Of a DNA stretch of 64,000 bases, positions 2,894-37,452 are shown piece after piece. A program made the position numbers and the translations under genes. Origin of the DNA: Hyphochytrium catenoides (lineage: Eukaryota; Protista; Hyphochytriomycota). Numbering within the stretch: the first letter of the stretch is position 1; the number at the start of each line of letters is the position of its first letter. The stretch spans positions 1 through 64,000 of the forward strand of contig FLMG01003587.1 of the NCBI GenBank assembly GCA_900088475.1, read 5' to 3'. The notes below the pieces were generated by a model. The model made no database searches, was not told the origin of the DNA, and saw nothing but the letters and a program-made list of their open reading frames with translations.

Positions 2894-5800
2894 TCACAGT
2901 CTCACCCTCGTCAAGCTCTGCGCCTTAGCGATGGCCTTCTTCATCTCTCTGTGTGCGCCTTCGAAGCTCAGCACGGCGACGGCACTCACTCTCACAGACT
3001 TGCCGAGAGCCTTCCCAAGGCGCCTGNNNNNNNNNNNNNNNNNNNNNNNNNNNNNNNNNNNATTCGTCAATATTCGAAGCCACCACCAGGCATTTTACTC
3101 TGTCTCTCCCTCCGTCAAGCGCTCGTCTCACTTCTCGCAAACCAAAGAGAAGACGCCGATGCTTCTTTGCCTTCAACGGCTCTCCCAGCCTCACTCTCTC
3201 TTGGAACTTCATCAGGTTCTGAAGACAAGAGAAGAGAAGCTTGTTAAGCTCTTCATCTTCGTCCTGGTTCACATATTCCCGGACAGCAGAGGAGTTCTGG
3301 GGCTTGGGAAAGGACGCAGGGAGAGAGGAGAAAGAAAGAGGAACCGCATGCACCGCCGCAGCCCGCTCTCCTTGTGGTTCTTCTTCTAAGGGGACGATAG
3401 GGCTGAGGGCTTGATGTTTGTCATTGTTCTGATTCTGTGGAAGAGCTGTCTTGGGCAAACCGGATGGGAAGGGAGAGAGAGAAGCATGGTCTGAGTTTTT
3501 CTTTTGTTCTCCGTCATCTAGGATGACTTGGACGCCTAGCGGTCTGCCACCGTAGACTTTGTTCCTGAGAAGGTGAGCGACCCTTGCGGCTCGCTCTATT
3601 CCCGTCAGTCTCAGTTGGACTGCGGGTCCTTTTGAAGCAGACGAGGCTGTGAGAAAGAGAGAGGGCTTCTCCTCTACATTACACCCGCTAAGAAAGTCAG
3701 AGACATCTTGAAGATGCTCTTCAACTTCTTCTTCGTCTTCTATCTCCTCTTCCGTTAGAAGAGAATGTACAAGAAGAGAGTATGCTCTCTCCTCTCGCTC
3801 AACCAGCTGGAGAGAGAGTGTGGAGCCTCCGTACTTGACATCTGCAAGGCTGCAAAAGGCCTCTATCGCCTCTTCCCCGTCTTGAAACGTCACTTGAACT
3901 CTTGGTTCTGCCTCCTCCTCCAATGCATCGCTTACATCTCTTGCGGCAGAGACGTGTTCCCTTTTGGCTCTTGCCTCTTCCTGTTTCTTCTGCCCTGGCA
4001 ACAGGGTCATCTCTCTAACCTTCATATAGCCGCTCAGAAACTCTCTGACGTCTCTCAAATGCTCTTTTAACTCCGACTCATCCTCCAGATCCGAGGAGGT
4101 TAGAAGGTTAGAGATCAGGAGGTGGTAGCGAAAGAAAGACGACGGAACTGCTGGAGAGAGAGACACAGAGAGCTTCTCTCCTTCGATGAGAGCCCTAGAG
4201 AGGAGATGGAGCCCATCATCTATGGCGTCACTTCCTACATTCAAGGCTAGTACTCTTTCTCTCTTTGGCGCTCTCTGAGCAGGCAGAGAAGTTGCCCCGA
4301 AGTTCTTGACTGAGATGCCTCCGCGCTCAAGCGCTTTGCTCACTACTTCCACTTTCCTCTGCACTACTTCCACGGGCTGGAGGCCTTCCAGCACGTTCTC
4401 CACGATCAGAAAGTCTCGTTTTGACTCCTCCTCAAGAGAGCTAAGAGAGATATAAGGTAGATCCCAAGGGGAAGAACGGGTAGAAAGCTCTCCAGAAGCT
4501 TTTTCTCCTTTGGTTGAAGAGACCTTGGCCCTTACGATCCTTCCTCCGAATACCTTCCCATCCAGAGCTAACGCAGCCGATAAGGCCATACCGGGTTCAC
4601 TATAAGTGGCAAGAATGACCGGCCTAAGCTGCTCATCTTCTCTCCTTTCCTGAGCATCATAATTCTTTCGTTCCTTTCCCCAGGAGGGCGACCCTTCTCT
4701 CTCTCTATCACCATCACCTTCCCTGTCCCAGTCCCTCCAGTCTTCTCTGACTCCTCCCTGTTCTTCGTCTCTGACTTTGACTTCTTGATGCCGACCTATA
4801 TCAAAGGCACTGATCTCTCCATACTTCGCGAGAAGAGTCAGGACTTCTAGCTTTATCTCTTCTGCTTCATCTTCATCCTCCATCTCCTCCTCCTCTACAT
4901 AGTTATACAAGGCGAGAGTACTCTGGACCTTCTCCTCTCGCTCTCCTCTCCCCCATCTCTCTTGGCCCTCGGGAGGAGAGAGGGAAGGGGAAGGTAATCG
5001 GACATACACACGTCTCCCATGGAGAAGAGAGTCTCTTAACGTGCTTGTTATGTGGGCAGTTGCGTCCTCCGAGGGCGATTCAAGAGAGAGCAGAGGCACT
5101 CTCTCCTCTGCTTCTCTTCTAGGTTCATGGCTCTCTACTCGCTGCAACGGTAGAGGAGGGAGGGCTCTCTGTATCTCGGAAGCCAGAAAGGAGAGATACT
5201 GCTCCAGCTCTTCCTCATTGTCCATCTTCTCCTCCCTCTGCATCTCCACAGAAATCAGAAGAGAAGATTGAAGAAGTTGTCGCCCTTCTAGCCATCTTCT
5301 CTTCCTTTCTCCCAAGATAGCTGTCTTTAGCTTCGATGGCTTCTTTGGTTTTGTCACTGTCTTGGTCACTCCTCTCCTCTTCACAACCTCTCCGTTGACT
5401 AGGCGAGGAGCGGGAGGCAGTGTCTCTTCTTTCTCTCTCTTTCCGAGAGAGAGAGAAGGAGGAAGAGTCGTCTTAGCATTCTTCCCTGCTTTCGGGGTCT
5501 CTCTCTTCTTCTCTGGTTCTCCATTTTTAACTGATTGCCTCGTCTTGTCCACTCCAAGCGCTCTGTCTTTTTGCTGAATGATGTCGAGAAGAGAGAGAGA
5601 GGAAGATGCTTTCGCTTTTGGCTTCTCCTTGTTTCTTTTCCGATCTAAGGAAGGCTGCTGCTGCCTAACACTTCTGGGGTCCCATACTTTCTGACGGCAA
5701 TATAGGGAAAGGAAAGTGACGGAATTCGAAGGAAAAGAGAGAGAGAAAGAGAGAGAGAGAGAGCAGGAAAGTATAGAGGGAGAGTGAGGGTGAGGAAGCC

Positions 5801-6573
5801 AGTAAGCAACGAGAGAAAGAGGAGATGACAGAGAGAGACACAGAGAGACAGAGAGGGAGGAGGCCAAAGAGAGAGGGAAGGGCAGCAGAATAGCTGTTCA
5901 GAGTCCTGCGAGAACTTAGACCTTCGCTGCGGCGCTGACTCTCCTTCAACTTATTTGCTACCTCTCTCTCTCTCGCTCGCTCTTTGCCGCTCCCCGACCG
6001 CCCCCTTCTTCCCTTTCTCCTCTTCTCTCTCTCTCCTCTCCCCCAACCCTTCCCCCTACTTTTCTCTCTTATATGAGAGAGAGAGAGAGATCTCCTTCTC
6101 TAGTTCTCTCTCTCTCTATTGTCTCTCCCTCTTTCTCTCGTGCGTAGCACACAGACAGACCATCGCCCTCCTAAAGCCGACACCCAGCTCGCTCAGCCAT
6201 CCGACACTCTTTCTGCTTTCCCATTGCCACACCAGCTTGCTTCCACTTTACCGCGTCTTCCAAGCTTGCTGAGGCGCCTTGCCACTTCTCTTCTCTCTCC
6301 TCTCGTCTCCTGACCAAGCCTCGCTTCGCACGGACCTCCAGCCCAGCACCGTCGCGAGTGCGAGAGGAGGAGGGCAAGGGCGGATACTCCTAAGATAGCA
6401 AGGAAGAGTCAGTAAATGAAGGAGAGAGAGGGATAAGACGGAGGGGGAAGGAGAGTGACGAGAGTTCAAGGAGAAGAAGTGAGAGAGTGGGACAGGGGAC
6501 CAGAGAGAAACTTAGAACCAACGCAAAGGGAGAGAAGTGATGGAACCAGCGGATAAGAGAGAGCGGGAGAGAC

Positions 6574-6626
<53 letters not shown>

Positions 6627-6796
6627 GAGCGAGAGAATTGATCGAAAGAAAGATAAAAGACAAGAGGAGGGGAGAGTGGAATAGGCTTGACACAAGGCAT
6701 TGAAGACTGAGATATGACTAGGGAGGTTTATCGTGCCTCATCATCGATGAAGAGAAGCGGTGCCCGCTGTCTCCTGCTTTGCGACTCCCTTTCCAT
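2894..6796 (-). CDS. SECISBP2: SECIS-binding protein 2 (SBP2) with an inserted array of UHM/RRM-like domains; multi-exon
   Basis: K-rich SID motif KRRGVTKTVTKPKKPSKLKTAILGERKRR (~5295-5385). L7Ae module REYVNQ...LQNLMKFQERVRLGEPLKAKKHRRLLFGLREVRRAL...KCLVVASNIDE. After the N gap another frame gives RRLGKALGKSVRVSAVAVLSFEGAHREMKKAIAKAQSL, stop TGA 2894-2896 (a further 3' intron is possible). Predicted start 6796 (MERESQSRRQRAPLLFIDDE|EYPPL) is less certain, and exons between ~6250 and ~5690 are unresolved. Confidence 0.9.
3027..3061. other. Assembly gap inside the SBP2 L7Ae coding region (causes an artefactual frameshift)
   Basis: 35 N. The frame changes across the gap, and roughly 30 L7Ae residues expected between NIDE and RRLGKA are missing. 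Confidence 0.9.
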
Positions 6797-7087
6797 CCTG
6801 TGGCGCCCTCTTCGGACTTAGTCAGCCCTCAGGAGGAGCCAGCCCTGAAGCTTTTTCCCACACTTCACTCGCCGCTCTTCTTCGCTTTGAAGCACGCTTC
6901 ATAACTGGCCGATCGAGGGAGGACAAGAGAGAGAGAACTGAAGAGAACAGGGTAGAGAGGAGCTGAGAGAGGGTGAGGCAGAGAGACGATGAGATGTGGG
7001 AGTTTGAGGGGGAAGAAGAGAGCGAGCGAGGAAGCGAGAGAGAGAGAGAGAGAGAGCAAGCGAGAGAGAGAAAGAGAGAGAGCAAGC

Positions 7088-7131
<44 letters not shown>
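6570..7131. repeat. (GA)n tracts in the predicted SBP2 intron 1 (~6570-6622) and upstream of SBP2 (~7035-7131)
   Basis: Directly visible. Confidence 0.95.
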
Positions 7132-7132
<1 letters not shown>

Positions 7133-7360
7133 GGCACAAACAAGATTTCTCCTCCCATCAGAACCGCATTAGCCTGACCTAAGGTTGCCTCATGCCCCTA
7201 CATTTTGTATCTCTCTCAGCACTATCTTCAGGCCATAATACTCTAACATCAATAACTACCATAAAGCAGACAGAATCTGTCCTGATATTGACGCCATTTC
7301 TCTTGCTTTGTTCTGCTTCTGATGTCCCAATTTTGAGCATTTTACCCTCTGTCTTGCTAG

Positions 7361-24771: not shown

Positions 24772-27700
24772 ATGGTGGGACTTAGCGATACCATGATCAT
24801 ACCAGGCACCCCACCAAGGGGAGCGCAGAGCGAACAGAGTGTCAGTAGCAAGGCAAAACCAGAGGAACTCCTCAGCAGTCACAGTGCCTCTGCTGCTCTC
24901 AAGGCTCTCCGTCAATCTCTTTTGACATGGGAAAAGACCTTCTTCCAAACCCATGGAAGACGACCAGCGAGAGAGGACATCGCGAATGACCAGCGCATGA
25001 AGGAGCAATACTCCAGATATAAGAGGCTCAAGACCGCACAAGACCACCAGCCGATTACTCAGGTAGCTGGATCGGAGCAAACAGCGCCTAAGAGAGGAAA
25101 GTTAGAGAACGATCCAAACAGAGAAGGTCCAGATAGAGCCGGGGAAAAGAAGACTGCGGATGCCGAAAGATTTAAAGATAGAGCACTACCGATGAGAGAA
25201 AGAAATGATCTCAAGAGTGATGAAAGTGGGACCAGTCGGCCATGGCTGAGAAAGTCAGAGCTATTGGCACAAGAACAGAGCAGAACAGGTGGTGGGAAAC
25301 TGGAAAGTCATGAGGAGCGTGATGGTGGCGGCTCGTGGCTCTCTCGGGCTCTGAAGAGGAAGAGAGAGGGAGCCAAGCCGAGCACGTTTGACGCCCGGTC
25401 ACGAACACAGATGCTGAGGGCGGCTGCCGCAGCTGGAGTGTCTACTAAGTCTGAGGGCCTCAAAGGTAAGTCACCGACACCGAGTACCCGTGCTCATAGG
25501 AGAGTAAGAAACTCCTGGGGAAAGAGGAAAGAGATCTCAAACGTTGAAAACCTTTCTCCAGTTCTTGGGCCTAACTATGACCTTCTTCGTTTGCTTTGCT
25601 CTACAGCCTTTAAGCGCGGAAGGCCTCTTTGTGTCCCTCCTAAAGGGCAACAAGAGACCGAGAGCCGGAGTGCTGCTAAACCTCTTCTTACGTCCCCGCT
25701 ACCCGTGGCTTGGCAGCGGGGAGAACCAGAATATGCGGCTACTGTGGACGGGGTGGCTCCAGGGCGAGGTAACGTACCCTCAGCTCCAATAGAAAGCAGA
25801 CCTGAACGCCACCAGCCAGCGCCAAATTCTAAAGCAACCAGCGGGAACGTTGGAAGGGAAAGAGAGGATGCAGAGGTGACGCCTGTCGCCAGTGATTATG
25901 GTTTGGAAAGCGAGAACAGACCCTTCTCCGCGGAGCAACTTCGCATTGGAGCTGCGCTTAGTGTAAGCCGAGCCTCCAACCCCTTCCGTCGCCGGCTGCA
26001 GGACGTGGCACATGACACAGAGTACATGGCCAGAGCATCTAGAGCACTGCACACTCTCTCCAAGCGGAAGGAAGAGGAAGACAAAAAGGTGGCGAGGGCG
26101 AGAGAAGAGAACAAAAAGGGGGATGCAGAGATACTAAAGGGGCTGCCGGATGCAGGAGAGAAAATAACTTCGTTTGATCATCACACTGACGAAGCCAACA
26201 AAGAACAGACGGGTCCTAGGACGCTACTCCCAGATAGCAGGCAAGGCAAAGTCTGTCCTGACCTGGAAAGCGGGACGAAGGACCAAGCTGGCGAGAAGCC
26301 ACTCGCGGAAGAGAAAGGAAGACAAGCGAAGGAAAGAAAGAGAAAGATGGTGGTCAGCGACAACTTCGTCCGCATGGATCTGAAAAAGAAATACAAAGGT
26401 AAAAGGAAGGTCAATCGTCGCTCTGATTGGGGCACTCGACACTCCAACCGCGAGCTGCACTCAGAGTGGAACTCTGACGAAAAGCGCAAAATGAAGCAAA
26501 GGAAGCGACAAAGAAGCAGAGACAGCGAGCTGCAGGATGTCATAGCTCACTATTTGGATAGGGAAGGACGGCCAGCAGACCCACTGCCTCCTTCTGCGCT
26601 CTCAAGTTTAATCTCTACCTCCCCTTCTTGTTTTGAGCCTCTGTGCTATGGACACGGCATTCCTGGCAAGCTTTTGAAGGTTAAAAAAGCAGGTACGTTT
26701 ACTTTGCTTCCCTTCCTCTGCTAGTACGATTGACTTGACTTTATCCTGCACAAGCGCTAACATAATAGGCATTCCTATTCTGGGCTCCAGCCTGAGCTGT
26801 CTCTTTCACTTTTGTTGTCGCTGTAAGACTTGGACTCGGATCTTTCTCCCAGCTAACCTTATCTTCATAACGTGGTCAGGAATGAACAAGGGACGTCCCT
26901 TCTACGTCTGCTCCCTTCCTCGTGAGATGCGATGTGACTTCTTTCTTTGGGCCGATGACGACTACAAACAAGCCCTAGAAAAGCTATCCAGACTCTCTCA
27001 AGAAGAGGAAAAGACCAGTGGAGTTGCAGCTGTGCGATGGGTGAAGGAGGAGGAAGAGGAGTGGAAGCGTAGGATGGAGAGGACACTCACGGTGAAAGAT
27101 GTGAAGCGCATGCTGAAGAAGACGGGTCTCACGTTGAATGGTAAAAAGAAAGAGATGATCCAGAGGCTCAGCGATTACAGAGCGGCAAAACGGCTCAAGA
27201 GTCTTCAGCCCAGTCCGGAGGAGATAGGGCCAAAGGAAAAAATGGCCACTGACAATGTTCAAGGCGATGAATTTAATGAAAAGGAGACGATTCAGAATGG
27301 CGAGCAGACAATGGGGATGGACGTAGACGAAGATCAAGTAGAAGAGAATTGCTTGAAGGAGGGCTGTAGAGACAAGAAGACTTCCAAGAGACTGCACTCT
27401 CTCCTTAGGTCGGTCTTCGGGTGCCAAGAGTTCCGGCCTGGTCAAGAATGGGCTATCTCTCGCGCTCTTGAAGGAAAGAGCTCATTGCTTCTTCTCCCTA
27501 CCGGAGGAGGAAAGTCTCTCACTTTCCAACTCCCTTCTATCCTTCTCCCTCATCTCACTCTAGTTATCTCCCCGTTGGTATCACTTATGAGAGATCAGGT
27601 AGATAGATTACCGCCAGAGGTGCCAGGCGCGTGCTTGCGCAGCGGGATGAGTGCCAAAGAGACTGCCTCTGTTCTCTATAGCTTAAGGATGAAGCTTGTT

Positions 27701-33800: not shown

Positions 33801-36800
33801 TGATCCAGGCAGCTAAGACAAAGAAGCATAGATATCGTCAGACGAGGTGAAAAAGAGTTAGTGACGAATTGCATGGGCCTAAGCCCTCAAATGACTTATG
33901 ACCCTAGCGAATTGTCTCAATAACACCTGGCAGGGAGAACTTGTCGATTCGATGGACGAATACGAAGTTCGAAACGAAGGTTTTGTTTCGGTTAAGCCGT
34001 ACCATGTAGACAGTTGTGTCCAGACCAAGCCGATCCCTTAGTAGCCGAAGGAGAGGAGTTACTCGCTGCGCAGTCTCCGAAAGAGGGTCAAGTACCGCGA
34101 CCACTTTCACCGGGGAAGAGGACTTGGACTCGATTTTCATCCATTTGCTGTCGGTCAGTTCCTGTGGGACAGCTACCCTCGGTTTTTTGTCGGTAAAGCC
34201 GAGGACATTGCTCAGAAGCATGAGTTTGTCCGAGATCTTTCGGGCTTCGCGGGGCGAAGACGGAGCCAAGTTCAACCCAGAGATCTTACTTGCAATTTCC
34301 CTAGTTCTTTCCGTACTTCTCTGTTCCTCAAGTGACGCAAGGAGGAAGAAGTCCTCTCCCCTCACCACGTTCGTCCCATCTACATGTTGCTTCCCAAATG
34401 TGCCTGCATCCTCATCTAAAAGAAGCCTTCCATTGACCATGACGTGGGCCCTCTGAGTTCCAAGAGCTAGTTGGCGGCTAAGTTTCGCACCCACAGCTAT
34501 CGTCTTATCCAAGGAGGTGTTATAAGACAACAGAGTGGCCTTGACCTTATCAGCCACCTCCTTTGACAACCACTTGCCTGCCAATTGAAGAGCCATCTCC
34601 TTCTGAGCCTTCAAGGTCCCCTCTGCGGAGACATCGTCGAGAAGCGAAGCGTAGAACTGGTACACTTTCTTGTCTGAAACATCCCCAAGCGCTGCATTAA
34701 CCGCCATGAACAGGTCCCCGAATGTGGTTTCTCTTCCATTGCTTCCCACAATTGTTTGAGATGGCACATGTAAAAAAGCGAGGCGAACCTTCGACAACAC
34801 CGTGGGAACAGAGTCCTCATCTCCACAATTGGCACAAGACACGAAGTTAAGAGCTTCCTTGGCCTGCTCCTTTCCTGCCTGGGTGCTAAGATCGCTGAAG
34901 ACCAGCAGGGAAATGTGCTTGGCATGGTCAAGATCCTTGCCCAAAACATGATGCCAAAACGGTATCTGCTTCTCTTCGTGGTCGCTCTCGTTCGTGAAGT
35001 GTGGCGAGAGCGAAAGATCTACCCAGCTGGCCGTTGCCTTGCTTTCCGTCAGTATCCTATGGTAGCGAGAATATGCATTCAAGTCTCCTAGGATGACTGC
35101 CTGAATATCAGACTCCTGCTTGATCTTGCCTTCCTGTATCAGGCGTCCCACTACTGCTTGCTCCTCCCTGATGAACTGTATAAGATTGCCCTGATACTCC
35201 AAGTTCTTTGTGAGCAGACCGTTCATAAGGAAGCAGTTGGAAGGGACACTCTTGGAACTGACAAATCTTGCCATTTTCTCTGCTCGACTGGCTCCGGTTT
35301 CCTTTTGCCGTAACACTTCTAAGCCCTTCAGAGTGAGACTCTTTCGGTACTTCTTTCTTTTGGCAAGAGCGTCATACTTGCTGATAACGAAGCCCACCGT
35401 CGGTTTGCCTTCCACTGCCGAAAGAGCCAAGAGGAAGTCGTTGACGGCCTTGTTTGCACCTTGATCCACCATGTAAGAAAGAAGCCGAACAAGGTCCCAG
35501 CACGAAATAGCGCTATCTTTTTGCTCTAGATTGGAGGCTCTCTTCTCGGGACAAGAGAACAGGAGCCCGAAGCGGAACGGTAGCATTCTCTCCTGGAACA
35601 TGAAGTGTGATTGAAGTGCAGTCTTGAACTCCGTTAGGGTAGGGTCAACCACAAAGATGCTGGTATACAAATTCTTCCTTATGACACGGAGGGAGAAAGT
35701 AGGAGCGAAGAAACTCTCTACGTTTGGTGGAAGAGGCTCGTACTGGGGATCCTTCTCAACGTCATTGAGGTAGATAATAAGGTCCTCTGCTCCCTGTGTG
35801 ATATCAATACGGAAGGAAGCCTCCCCGGTCTGTTCTCTTGGACTTGACTCAATAATCGTCTTCACTATACTCTGCAGATCATCATGACGGTGCCCTCTTT
35901 GCTCCTTCATTACTTCCTCTACATCGTTAGCAGAGCCAAGCGTCCTTCTGAGCCTCGCCATATTGTCAATCTCATCTCGGACAAGCTTGAGAACGGTGTA
36001 AGGGTTGAAGGAAGTCGTTTGCGCCTGTGCAACCTCAGCCCCATTAATAAAGAGGAGACCTTTGAACTCTTCCAGATGAAACTTGGCCGCTTTCACCTCC
36101 TCTCTGAGATCGTCGGGTACCTTTATCTTTGAGAGACGATGAACTAAGACAGGGAAGTTCTGAGAGAGGAGTTGCAGGCGTAAAAGAGGATCATCTGCTT
36201 CCTTGACATCTGCAAGTGTTGCTAGTCCAATATCTCCTATGTCCCAGGCGTTAAGCTTATCCTCTTCTTGTTGCTCGCTTAGTGCCTCTTTAAATCTGAG
36301 AATGTCCTTTTTAAGCTCCGGCTTCCGCTTTAGAAGTTTGTCAAAGAGGAAACCGTGAATATCCTCCTCCTCTAGCAGGAGGCCATCCTCGTCATCTTCG
36401 TCGACTTCATGCGCTTCTTCATCTCCCTCCGCCTCGCTGTTGCCTAACTGGCTGACAGGGTCATCGATATTCTTGTACTCTAAGTTCTTGATATCCAGAG
36501 CTACGCCAAAGCCTTGAAGAAGAGTCGGGAAGCCTTCGGATGGCGGCATATGCCTGAAAATATACCGTACTTTGCCTTCGGCAGATTTCGTCTTCAACAG
36601 GTTATGGAAGGAAGCAAACGCAGGAGACCCCAGCTGGCCGTACACAATGACTGTCTTACTCTGCCTTCCTGCCGGCGAAAGGTAGATGTGGTCGAAAGAG
36701 AATATCTCAAGCGAAGAGCTGATATTCTCTGTGCTTTCATTAGAGTTCAAGAGCGGCCGCTTGGAGATAAGGCTGCCGAGTTCTGCAACGGAGCATGCTA

Positions 36801-37452
36801 CTGACGTCGCACCTTCAACCAATGCTAGTGCTCCCGTATTCCCACAGGCATTCTCGATTTCTGAGAAGAGCTGCAGACCGATTAACGTCAGTCCTGGAGT
36901 ATTACCCCTTGCATAAGGCTCGCAGCTCTAAGCTGACCTGGTAGTAAAGCTCTACGGTAGGAGCATAAGCTCTGGTATGCAACGCCACTTCCAGCACCTG
37001 GGTCAAGGTTCCACACCTTAGACGGTAAGGTAACCAAGTGACCAAGATACCTTGGGGCAGCTGCTCATACCTTTTGCATATCCTCGTCTAGAATCCCCGA
37101 CGACATGGCAAGTGACCGCTGCACTAGCTCCTGATAGATAGCCTCGGACGACAGGGCTTCTACCTTCAAACTCAGAGGCTCGGCCACCCATCCCTCAACA
37201 AACTGCCAAAAAGCCTCTCCAGAGGCATCCGCCAGAAATTGACTGCATATGAAATACTCAGGGATAAGCTGCGCCATGAGATAGAGCAGAAGCCACTGGA
37301 ACTTACCTTGTTTCAAAAACGGGAGATAGCGCGCTGCTCTTCCAAGGCGCCTTCAGCTTCACAGTAACCTTCCTCGCTTGTCCATCAAGCAAGGAGCCAA
37401 GAATAAGGACTCCAAGGAATAAGAAGGTCCCAGCGGCAGGGAACCTCGTCAT
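30802..37452 (-). CDS. UGGT: UDP-glucose:glycoprotein glucosyltransferase
   Basis: Signal peptide [37 protein letters not shown]; [16 protein letters not shown]; [11 protein letters not shown]; [19 protein letters not shown]24 domain [29 protein letters not shown]...[47 protein letters not shown]-terminal HEDL ER-retention signal. Confidence 0.97.

Follow-up and report, generated by a model that had tools for sequence, protein, structure and literature searches.

Positions 1 to 64,000 of contig FLMG01003587.1 of Hyphochytrium catenoides (GenBank assembly GCA_900088475.1), the whole stretch that we refer to as the window, include a gene for a homologue of SBP2, the central factor in the reading of UGA as selenocysteine. 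A minus-strand open reading frame (ORF) of 980 codons, free of stops from 2925 to 5867, contains the SID core motif, a repeat array and the beginning of the L7Ae module, and a stop-free run of this length at about 50% GC excludes chance. The subject of this report is the array. Between SID and L7Ae the protein is predicted to have four RNA-recognition motif (RRM) folds, here called units A, D, B and C in protein order; three of them resemble the U2AF homology motifs (UHMs) of splicing factors and the remaining one appears to be a decayed copy. The features of the gene are the following, with the homologue-unit profile being built from 122 units, taken from homologues only.

2894..5690, minus strand: SBP2 coding exon, bounded by a putative splice acceptor and by the stop codon (2894-2896)
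5268..5444, minus strand: SID core, K-rich segment KKPSKLKTAILGERKRRW (phmmer alignment to 7zjw_B residues 495-548)
4989..5255, minus strand: segment ending in LHGRRVYVRL, unsupported as an RRM (AlphaFold2 gives a helical SID extension and disorder)
4512..4928, minus strand: unit A, predicted RRM 1 of 4 (homologue-unit profile, E 1.5e-18)
4149..4421, minus strand: unit D, predicted RRM 2 of 4, ending in IEGEKLSVSL (AlphaFold2 fold and alignment position)
3792..4139, minus strand: unit B, predicted RRM 3 of 4 (homologue-unit profile, E 9.4e-17)
3513..3791, minus strand: unit C, predicted RRM 4 of 4 (homologue-unit profile, E 1e-12)
3063..3326, minus strand: conserved pre-L7Ae block and N-terminal part of the L7Ae (K-turn-binding) module (phmmer match to 7zjw_B 616-699)
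3027..3061, no strand: run of 35 N within the L7Ae module; the frames on its two sides differ
2894..3025, minus strand: C-terminal part of L7Ae (RRLGKALGKSVRVSAVAVLSFEGA...) and stop codon (from translation)

The SBP2 gene and its product

A phmmer search of all PDB sequences matched the product to human SBP2 (7zjw_B, residues 616-699, E 4e-7) over a region that runs from the pre-L7Ae block into the L7Ae module, and no other L7Ae-family protein was matched at E<10 in that search. In a second local alignment KKPSKLKTAILGER pairs with the human SID core KAKKPTSLKKIILKER. Here AILGE is the counterpart of human IILKE, the role of which is cited in PMC2746813, and the aromatic residue of the tail is Trp. 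The core motif [KR]KxSxLKxxILxER is kept throughout the family alignment, which conserves three elements, namely the SID motif, the pre-L7Ae block and the L7Ae module. Exhaustive HMMER searching of 1.84 billion representatives gave 262 relatives, the best of them 34% identical; most align in the pre-L7Ae block/L7Ae region, and several carry the name SBP2 from their sources (including JGI). A sequence-only reading of this DNA, made without database searches, had named the gene SBP2, and the match to human SBP2, the SID core motif and the L7Ae module bear out this identification: judged from its sequence, the ORF product is an SBP2 homologue.

Vertebrate SBP2/SECISBP2 (7zjw_B) has the same elements in the same order, a SID core (KKPSxLKxxILxER), the pre-L7Ae block and L7Ae. 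In the human protein the SID is assigned to aa 408-545 and the RNA-binding domain (RBD) to aa 623-784 (PMC2746813). The linker between them is about 80 aa long and has no domain, whereas the window protein has about 650 aa at this place with four predicted RRM folds.

The L7Ae module is interrupted in the assembly. Pfam Ribosomal_L7Ae scores only 16.8 bits on the window protein against a cut-off of 22.1, because the run of N truncates the module; the gap costs L7Ae about 28-30 codons relative to the family consensus (YGAIDxKLQEILDLAxxExVPVFFE). Past the N run the other frame resumes L7Ae, fits the family consensus KRxLGKAxGKxIKVxVVGIQNADGA and ends with ...AQSLTRVRL before the stop codon. The N run thus looks like an assembly gap or mask and not like a defect of the gene.

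At the other end, the first approximately 59 codons of the ORF are a CT-repeat, followed by a putative acceptor, cag/aaa at 5691/5690, which we infer from the sequence. The SBP2 start codon would therefore lie in another exon upstream; a tblastn search with the N-termini of homologues did not find the N-terminal exon or exons. It is unlikely that SID, array and L7Ae belong to separate transcripts, since SID, array and the start of L7Ae lie on one exon and MMETSP homologue transcripts labelled 'complete' encode RRM_1 and L7Ae together.

The repeat units and their predicted fold

AlphaFold2 was applied to the protein from SID to L7Ae (776 aa, alignment of 60 rows, mean pLDDT 70.3). All of the units A, D, B and C have beta-alpha-beta-beta-alpha-beta topology in this model, where they occupy the following positions.

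Model residues 156-293: unit A, pLDDT 80-95 outside its insert
Model residues 327-412: unit D, pLDDT 82-95
Model residues 422-531: unit B
Model residues 536-624: unit C

Modelled alone, unit C has a pLDDT of 88.2 and a pTM of 0.78. A second profile, made from a larger family set of 125 units, matched 465 PDB sequences (E up to 1), and the best 60 of the 465 are RRM/UHM proteins, with E values down to 5e-22. Pfam RRM_1 matches 66 of the 125 family units, and both RRM_1 and L7Ae are above the Pfam cut-offs in eight of nine full-length homologues, the ninth (P0024) having RRM_1 only. In agreement with the prediction of the sequence-only reading, units A, B, C and D are RRM folds according to the models and, for A, B and C, the profiles.

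The same reading had counted about five tandem units, three of them clear and two degenerate, over some 590 aa between SID and L7Ae. The distance is close to our own figure of approximately 650 aa between SID motif and pre-L7Ae block, and the positions given for the three clear units are confirmed, all three matching the homologue-unit profile (E 1e-12 to 1.5e-18). The degenerate units fared differently: the one ending in IEGEKLSVSL (unit D) folds as an RRM in the AlphaFold2 model, while the one ending in LHGRRVYVRL (4989-5255) is not supported by HMM, hhalign, AlphaFold2 or homologue alignment. It scores -2.7 bits with the HMM and has an hhalign P of 0.041 in register; AlphaFold2 gives it helices at 20-54, 59-76 and 108-122 and no strands, and it aligns to no unit of the homologues. 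The alignment is shallow in this segment, and the fifth unit is rejected as unsupported rather than disproved. The RRM folds predicted between SID and L7Ae are thus four.

Units A, D, B and C align one-to-one with units 1, 2, 3 and 4 of the homologues. Pairwise similarity is significant between B and C (BLASTP E 2e-6) and is not significant between A and B (E 4.5). There is no DNA-level tandem repeat within the array, so the repeat is old and detectable at the protein level only. The N-terminal half of unit A aligns with the U2AF65 UHM (phmmer, PDB). Its beta2-beta3 loop holds a disordered, low-complexity insert of about 50 aa (4632-4787, pLDDT <50) that is rich in Arg, Asp, Glu and Trp (…REDWRDWDREGDGDRERE…), and the beta2-beta3 loop of unit B holds a helical insert of about 30 aa.

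Unit D has lost the family signature. Its acidic helix A is missing, EGE replaces GG, the HMM profiles do not detect it and its hhalign P is only 0.077. It aligns, nevertheless, to unit 2 in 29 of the 30 four-unit homologues of the alignment, and we regard it as a decayed copy with the fold retained, as modelled.

UHM-like character and distribution

The nearest relatives of the units in the PDB are UHMs. With a profile made from the three window units A, B and C, the nine best PDB matches are all UHMs (U2AF65 1e-3, Tat-SF1 5e-3, SPF45 6e-2). The best single-domain scores of the 125-unit profile are those of the UHMs of U2AF65 (55 bits, 5e-14) and Tat-SF1 (54 bits, 1.7e-13), followed by PUF60 (1e-9) and U2AF35 (42 bits, 1e-9), the range for UHMs extending to 2e-7. 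Profile positions 2-30, which cover strand 1 and the acidic helix, are aligned by UHMs only; canonical RRMs start at about position 30. The resemblance to U2AF65 from beta1 through helix A is residue for residue (NxL-x-EE-L-DDEE-x-EE...KYG). For the model of unit C, the top 20 Foldseek matches are mostly UHMs of RBM39, Tat-SF1, U2AF65 and PUF60. VIA-align gives UHM Z values of 9.7 for U2AF65, 9.4 for Tat-SF1, 9.3 for U2AF35, 9.3 for PUF60 and 8.8 for SPF45 with 85-90 residues aligned, and Z values of 8-9.5 for plain RRMs with 75-80 residues aligned.

The UHMs of U2AF65 (RRM3), Tat-SF1, PUF60, SPF45, U2AF35 and RBM39 share with the window units the RRM fold, an acidic helix A and degenerate RNP motifs. 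In units A, B and C, RNP2 position 2 is A, L and L, RNP1 position 3 is V, R and A, and RNP1 position 5 is L, Q and Q, with no aromatic residue at any of these sites. Helix A is long and acidic in all three (EEEMEDEDEAEE, SSDLEDESELKE and EEEIEDEEEVEE), and no feature of the family is better conserved, with columns of D at 99%, E at 94% and D/E above 90%. The arrangement differs from that of splicing factors, where the UHM is one C-terminal domain; here a tandem array of four RRM folds is predicted within a translation-recoding factor.

The motif that defines UHMs is a different matter. In SPF45 and PUF60 the Trp pocket is formed by an Arg-Glu salt bridge, with the Glu from helix A, and by a Phe, the Arg and Phe belonging to the Arg-X-Phe motif in the alphaB-beta4 loop (PMC7648758). 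The units of 31 four-unit homologues carry L/M/T at the Arg position, where no more than 4 of 31 per unit have R or K, and I/L/V at the Phe position, where 2-6 of 31 per unit are aromatic. The window units have K-V-F (A), V-K-Y (B) and K-V-Y (C), that is, always an aromatic, never Arg and in two of the units Lys, and they only approximate Arg-X-Phe. With these residues the window units are closer to UHMs at this position than the units of the relatives, most of which are aliphatic there. The sequence-only reading had taken an 'RXF-like hairpin' together with the acidic helix as the UHM signature. The hairpin fails as a family feature, and the UHM assignment stands in part: the nearest relatives, the acidic helix A and the degenerate RNPs agree with it, whereas the defining motif is absent from the family. 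We therefore class units A, B and C among the UHM-like RRMs and do not regard them as proven UHMs. Without a conserved Arg-X-Phe clamp in the family, classical capture by the array of Trp-containing UHM ligand motifs (ULMs) seems doubtful.

The distribution was surveyed in 151 SBP2 sequences, comprising 150 representatives among the matches listed and the window's own. Units are present in 85 of the 151, among them 35 sequences with three units, 31 with four and 2 with five. The named unit-bearing sources are all ochrophytes (Ectocarpus, Laminaria, Chrysoparadoxa, Pelagomonas and Bacillariaceae). ESM Atlas clusters with RRM_1 and L7Ae come from Oomycota and Bacillariophyta, one of them auto-named 'SECIS binding protein 2 family protein', and the two best AlphaFold DB cluster matches are RRM_1 + L7Ae proteins without informative names. 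The sequence-only reading had mentioned RRM-bearing SBP2s among stramenopile predicted proteins, a statement that the named ochrophyte homologues and the Atlas clusters confirm.

Uncharacterised proteins of ochrophytes and oomycetes that have RRM_1 and Ribosomal_L7Ae share both architecture and units with the window protein, for example Pelagomonas calceolata CAH0368056.1, Ectocarpus fasciculatus CAM9808295.1 and the AlphaFold DB entries A0A1Z5KEV5 and A0A7S2VB86. They are 21-34% identical to the window protein and their C-terminal regions group with that of the window on the tree; compared with them, the window protein has a decayed unit 2 and about 90 extra residues between SID and unit 1. 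On the tree of the unit-free C-terminal region the unit-bearing rows cluster, requiring 4 changes versus 38.8 with shuffled labels. Three unit-less rows fall inside the cluster; two are short fragments (198 and 295 aa) and the third, P0084 (569 aa), is on a long branch. The window protein is placed with brown-alga and Chrysoparadoxa sequences, also on a long branch. The tree looks like one in which a single gain placed the array at the SID/RBD junction. An array of this kind is the usual SBP2 layout of a clade found in ochrophytes, mostly with three or four units. Family unit 1 has a consensus of its own (DELEDDDEYEEI…PAFVxF…ACWxGLVxGG) and, unlike units 2-4, is aromatic at RNP1 position 5 in 28 of 31 proteins, from which it follows that the four positions are old and individually specialised.

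The same junction has been altered in another way in Aedes aegypti, where SID and RBD are encoded as separate proteins (PMC2746813). There the junction is split into two genes, and in the window protein it is expanded by inserted domains; the split in Aedes indicates that the SID/RBD junction is structurally permissive.

Two conserved Trp sites lie outside the units. The SID tail of the window protein (5286-5309) reads ERKRRW, and W or Y stands four residues after 'ER' in 57 of 57 alignment rows of unit-bearing homologues (W 86%, Y 14%). In a sample taken by regular expression the aromatic was found in 15/15 unit-bearing and 8/26 unit-less proteins. It occurs in unit-less SBP2s such as that of the chytrid Batrachochytrium (KARF), and is therefore independent of the array; co-occurrence of the two was rejected as proof of coupling on the same ground. 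The second Trp is in the linker after unit 1 (4452-4475, SSPWDLPY), where 48 of 54 homologues have [DE][DE]W-x-x-x-[CVL]-L. This site was considered as a second ULM and rejected, the residues preceding the Trp being acidic and not basic.

Possible roles of the array, and neighbouring sequence

The reading that we favour, with somewhat better than even confidence, is that of an SBP2 with an RRM array at the SID/RBD junction (A-C UHM-like, D decayed) that serves in protein docking or as an intramolecular partner. Most likely the array would offer several modules for the docking of proteins or peptides; alternatively it may act within the molecule, as an acidic partner for the SID and K-rich segments, which are basic. 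With either role the array would form a loop between SID and RBD, which still have to meet on the selenocysteine insertion sequence (SECIS). SID and RBD function when separated in other species, and the junction should therefore tolerate a large insertion. Because the RNA-contact aromatics are lost and the acidic face is the best-conserved part, we infer a docking role, and a protein or peptide docking platform appears more likely than an RNA binder.

Several observations weigh against this reading. The window's own units are below Pfam RRM_1 detection, both in the whole protein and unit by unit; as evidence against an RRM fold this null result is overridden by the clear matches to the homologue-derived profile and by AlphaFold2. 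The fold of unit D rests on AlphaFold2 with an alignment whose homologues have a true RRM at that position. Structure hardly divides UHM from plain RRM (Z 9.7 for the best UHM versus 9.5 for the RRM of TRMT2A), and we give more weight to the sequence evidence for a UHM-like branch than to the structural evidence, whose margin is small. Finally, Arg-X-Phe is missing from the family, so that the known UHM mechanism is not simply transferable.

This last point bears most directly on the proposal of the sequence-only reading that the units are true UHMs which bind Trp-ULM peptides of SF1/SF3b155, SBP2 thereby coupling selenoprotein messenger ribonucleoprotein assembly to splicing or nonsense-mediated decay. 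The best sequence and fold matches are indeed ULM-binding UHMs (U2AF65, Tat-SF1, PUF60 and SPF45), and units A, B and C keep an aromatic at the Phe position, two of them with Lys at the Arg position. The Trp pocket of SPF45 and PUF60, however, is formed by the Arg-Glu salt bridge and the Phe (PMC7648758), and the 31 four-unit homologues do not conserve Arg-X-Phe; no paper in the searchable literature links SBP2 with UHMs, and family resemblance is the only ground for a coupling to splicing or decay. We consider this proposal very unlikely. That the units are RNA-binding RRMs which, by way of non-canonical surfaces, make binding to the SECIS, the selenoprotein 3'UTR or ribosomal RNA tighter or more specific is an unlikely alternative, for which one may cite that SBP2 itself is an RNA-binding factor, that Pfam RRM_1 detects half of the family's units, that family unit 1 keeps its RNP1 position 5 aromatic (28/31) and that the fold search with the whole array finds, after the SBP2 relatives, RNA binders with several RRMs, such as PABP. 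Against it, all window units and most family units lack aromatic residues at RNP2 position 2 and at RNP1 positions 3 and 5, and conservation is strongest in a dense acidic helix, which is expected to repel RNA.

An intramolecular switch, in which the basic, Trp-ending SID tail (ERKRRW) docks in a UHM-like unit and holds SBP2 closed until SECIS or a partner is met, would account for the tail aromatic in all 57 unit-bearing homologues and for its frequency in the regular-expression sample (15/15 versus 8/26). Yet Batrachochytrium (KARF) has the aromatic too, as do several groups that lack units and lie close to the unit-bearing clade, and phylogenetically the counts are not independent of each other. 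The Trp is followed by basic residues (W-R/K-E), whereas in ULMs acidic or polar residues follow it. The SID tail is modelled as a long helix by AlphaFold2, and the Arg-X-Phe clamp is absent from the family; on balance we hold the switch to be quite unlikely. That in the lineage of the window the array serves as a spacer, largely neutral and in decay, is highly improbable. In its favour, unit D has lost the family signature, the inserts of units A (low-complexity) and B (helical) are long and no window unit reaches Pfam RRM_1; on the other hand, the homologue profile still recognises units A, B and C (E 1e-12 to 1e-18), whose near-invariant D, E and GG are intact, 980 codons stay open, and the layout is kept in brown algae, pelagophytes and diatoms.

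There is also a bolder reading, which we put forward tentatively and think unlikely to be right: the array may represent a new functional class of UHM-derived domains in which an aliphatic pocket replaces the Arg-X-Phe Trp clamp and which reads conserved aromatic and basic motifs of the selenocysteine machinery. Candidate ligands of such a pocket would be the W/Y of the SID tail, the [DE][DE]W motif after unit 1, and motifs of ribosomal or eEFSec partners. If this is true, SBP2 would have a built-in multivalent regulatory switch that is missing in animals.

The accepted domain map of SBP2 (N-terminal region, SID and RBD) derives from animals. A large clade of ecologically dominant algae, with brown algae, diatoms, pelagophytes and probably oomycetes, builds the protein differently, with three to five UHM-like RRM folds at the SID/RBD junction. 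Diatoms and pelagophytes include organisms with very large selenoproteomes, and an extra interaction platform on SBP2 would be a lead on how recoding is organised or regulated in them. The branch of UHM-like RRMs would also extend beyond splicing, here without the Arg-X-Phe clamp, which bears on ligand recognition by such domains. No paper linking SBP2 with RRM or UHM domains was found in the searchable literature, and these domains do not figure in an evolutionary survey of SBP2 from 2009. The combination of RRM_1 and L7Ae in these proteins is already visible in domain databases but unstudied, and the finding is of such an architecture and not of a new principle. What is new is the UHM-like branch, the fixed positions of four units, the apparent single gain at the junction and the lack of the Arg-X-Phe clamp.

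Other long ORFs lie nearby at 33904-36822 (minus strand) and 24772-26724 (plus strand), of which one is UGGT-like and the other has a Drc1/Sld2 domain. The UGGT-like ORF has thioredoxin-like domains 12-15 (E down to 2e-33), and its best relatives, from plants and Dictyostelium, are 25-31% identical, with none above 31% among the candidates scored; this suggests that the source lineage is poorly sampled. The replication-checkpoint domain Drc1/Sld2 is matched in the other neighbouring ORF at E 3e-11. The surroundings of SBP2 are dense in (GA)n/(CT)n microsatellites (226-299, 820-938, 1402-1499, 2639-2699, 5736-5859, 6556-6636 and 7017-7136), which explain why spurious ORFs of the 'LSLSLS' and 'ERERER' type are so numerous on both strands.

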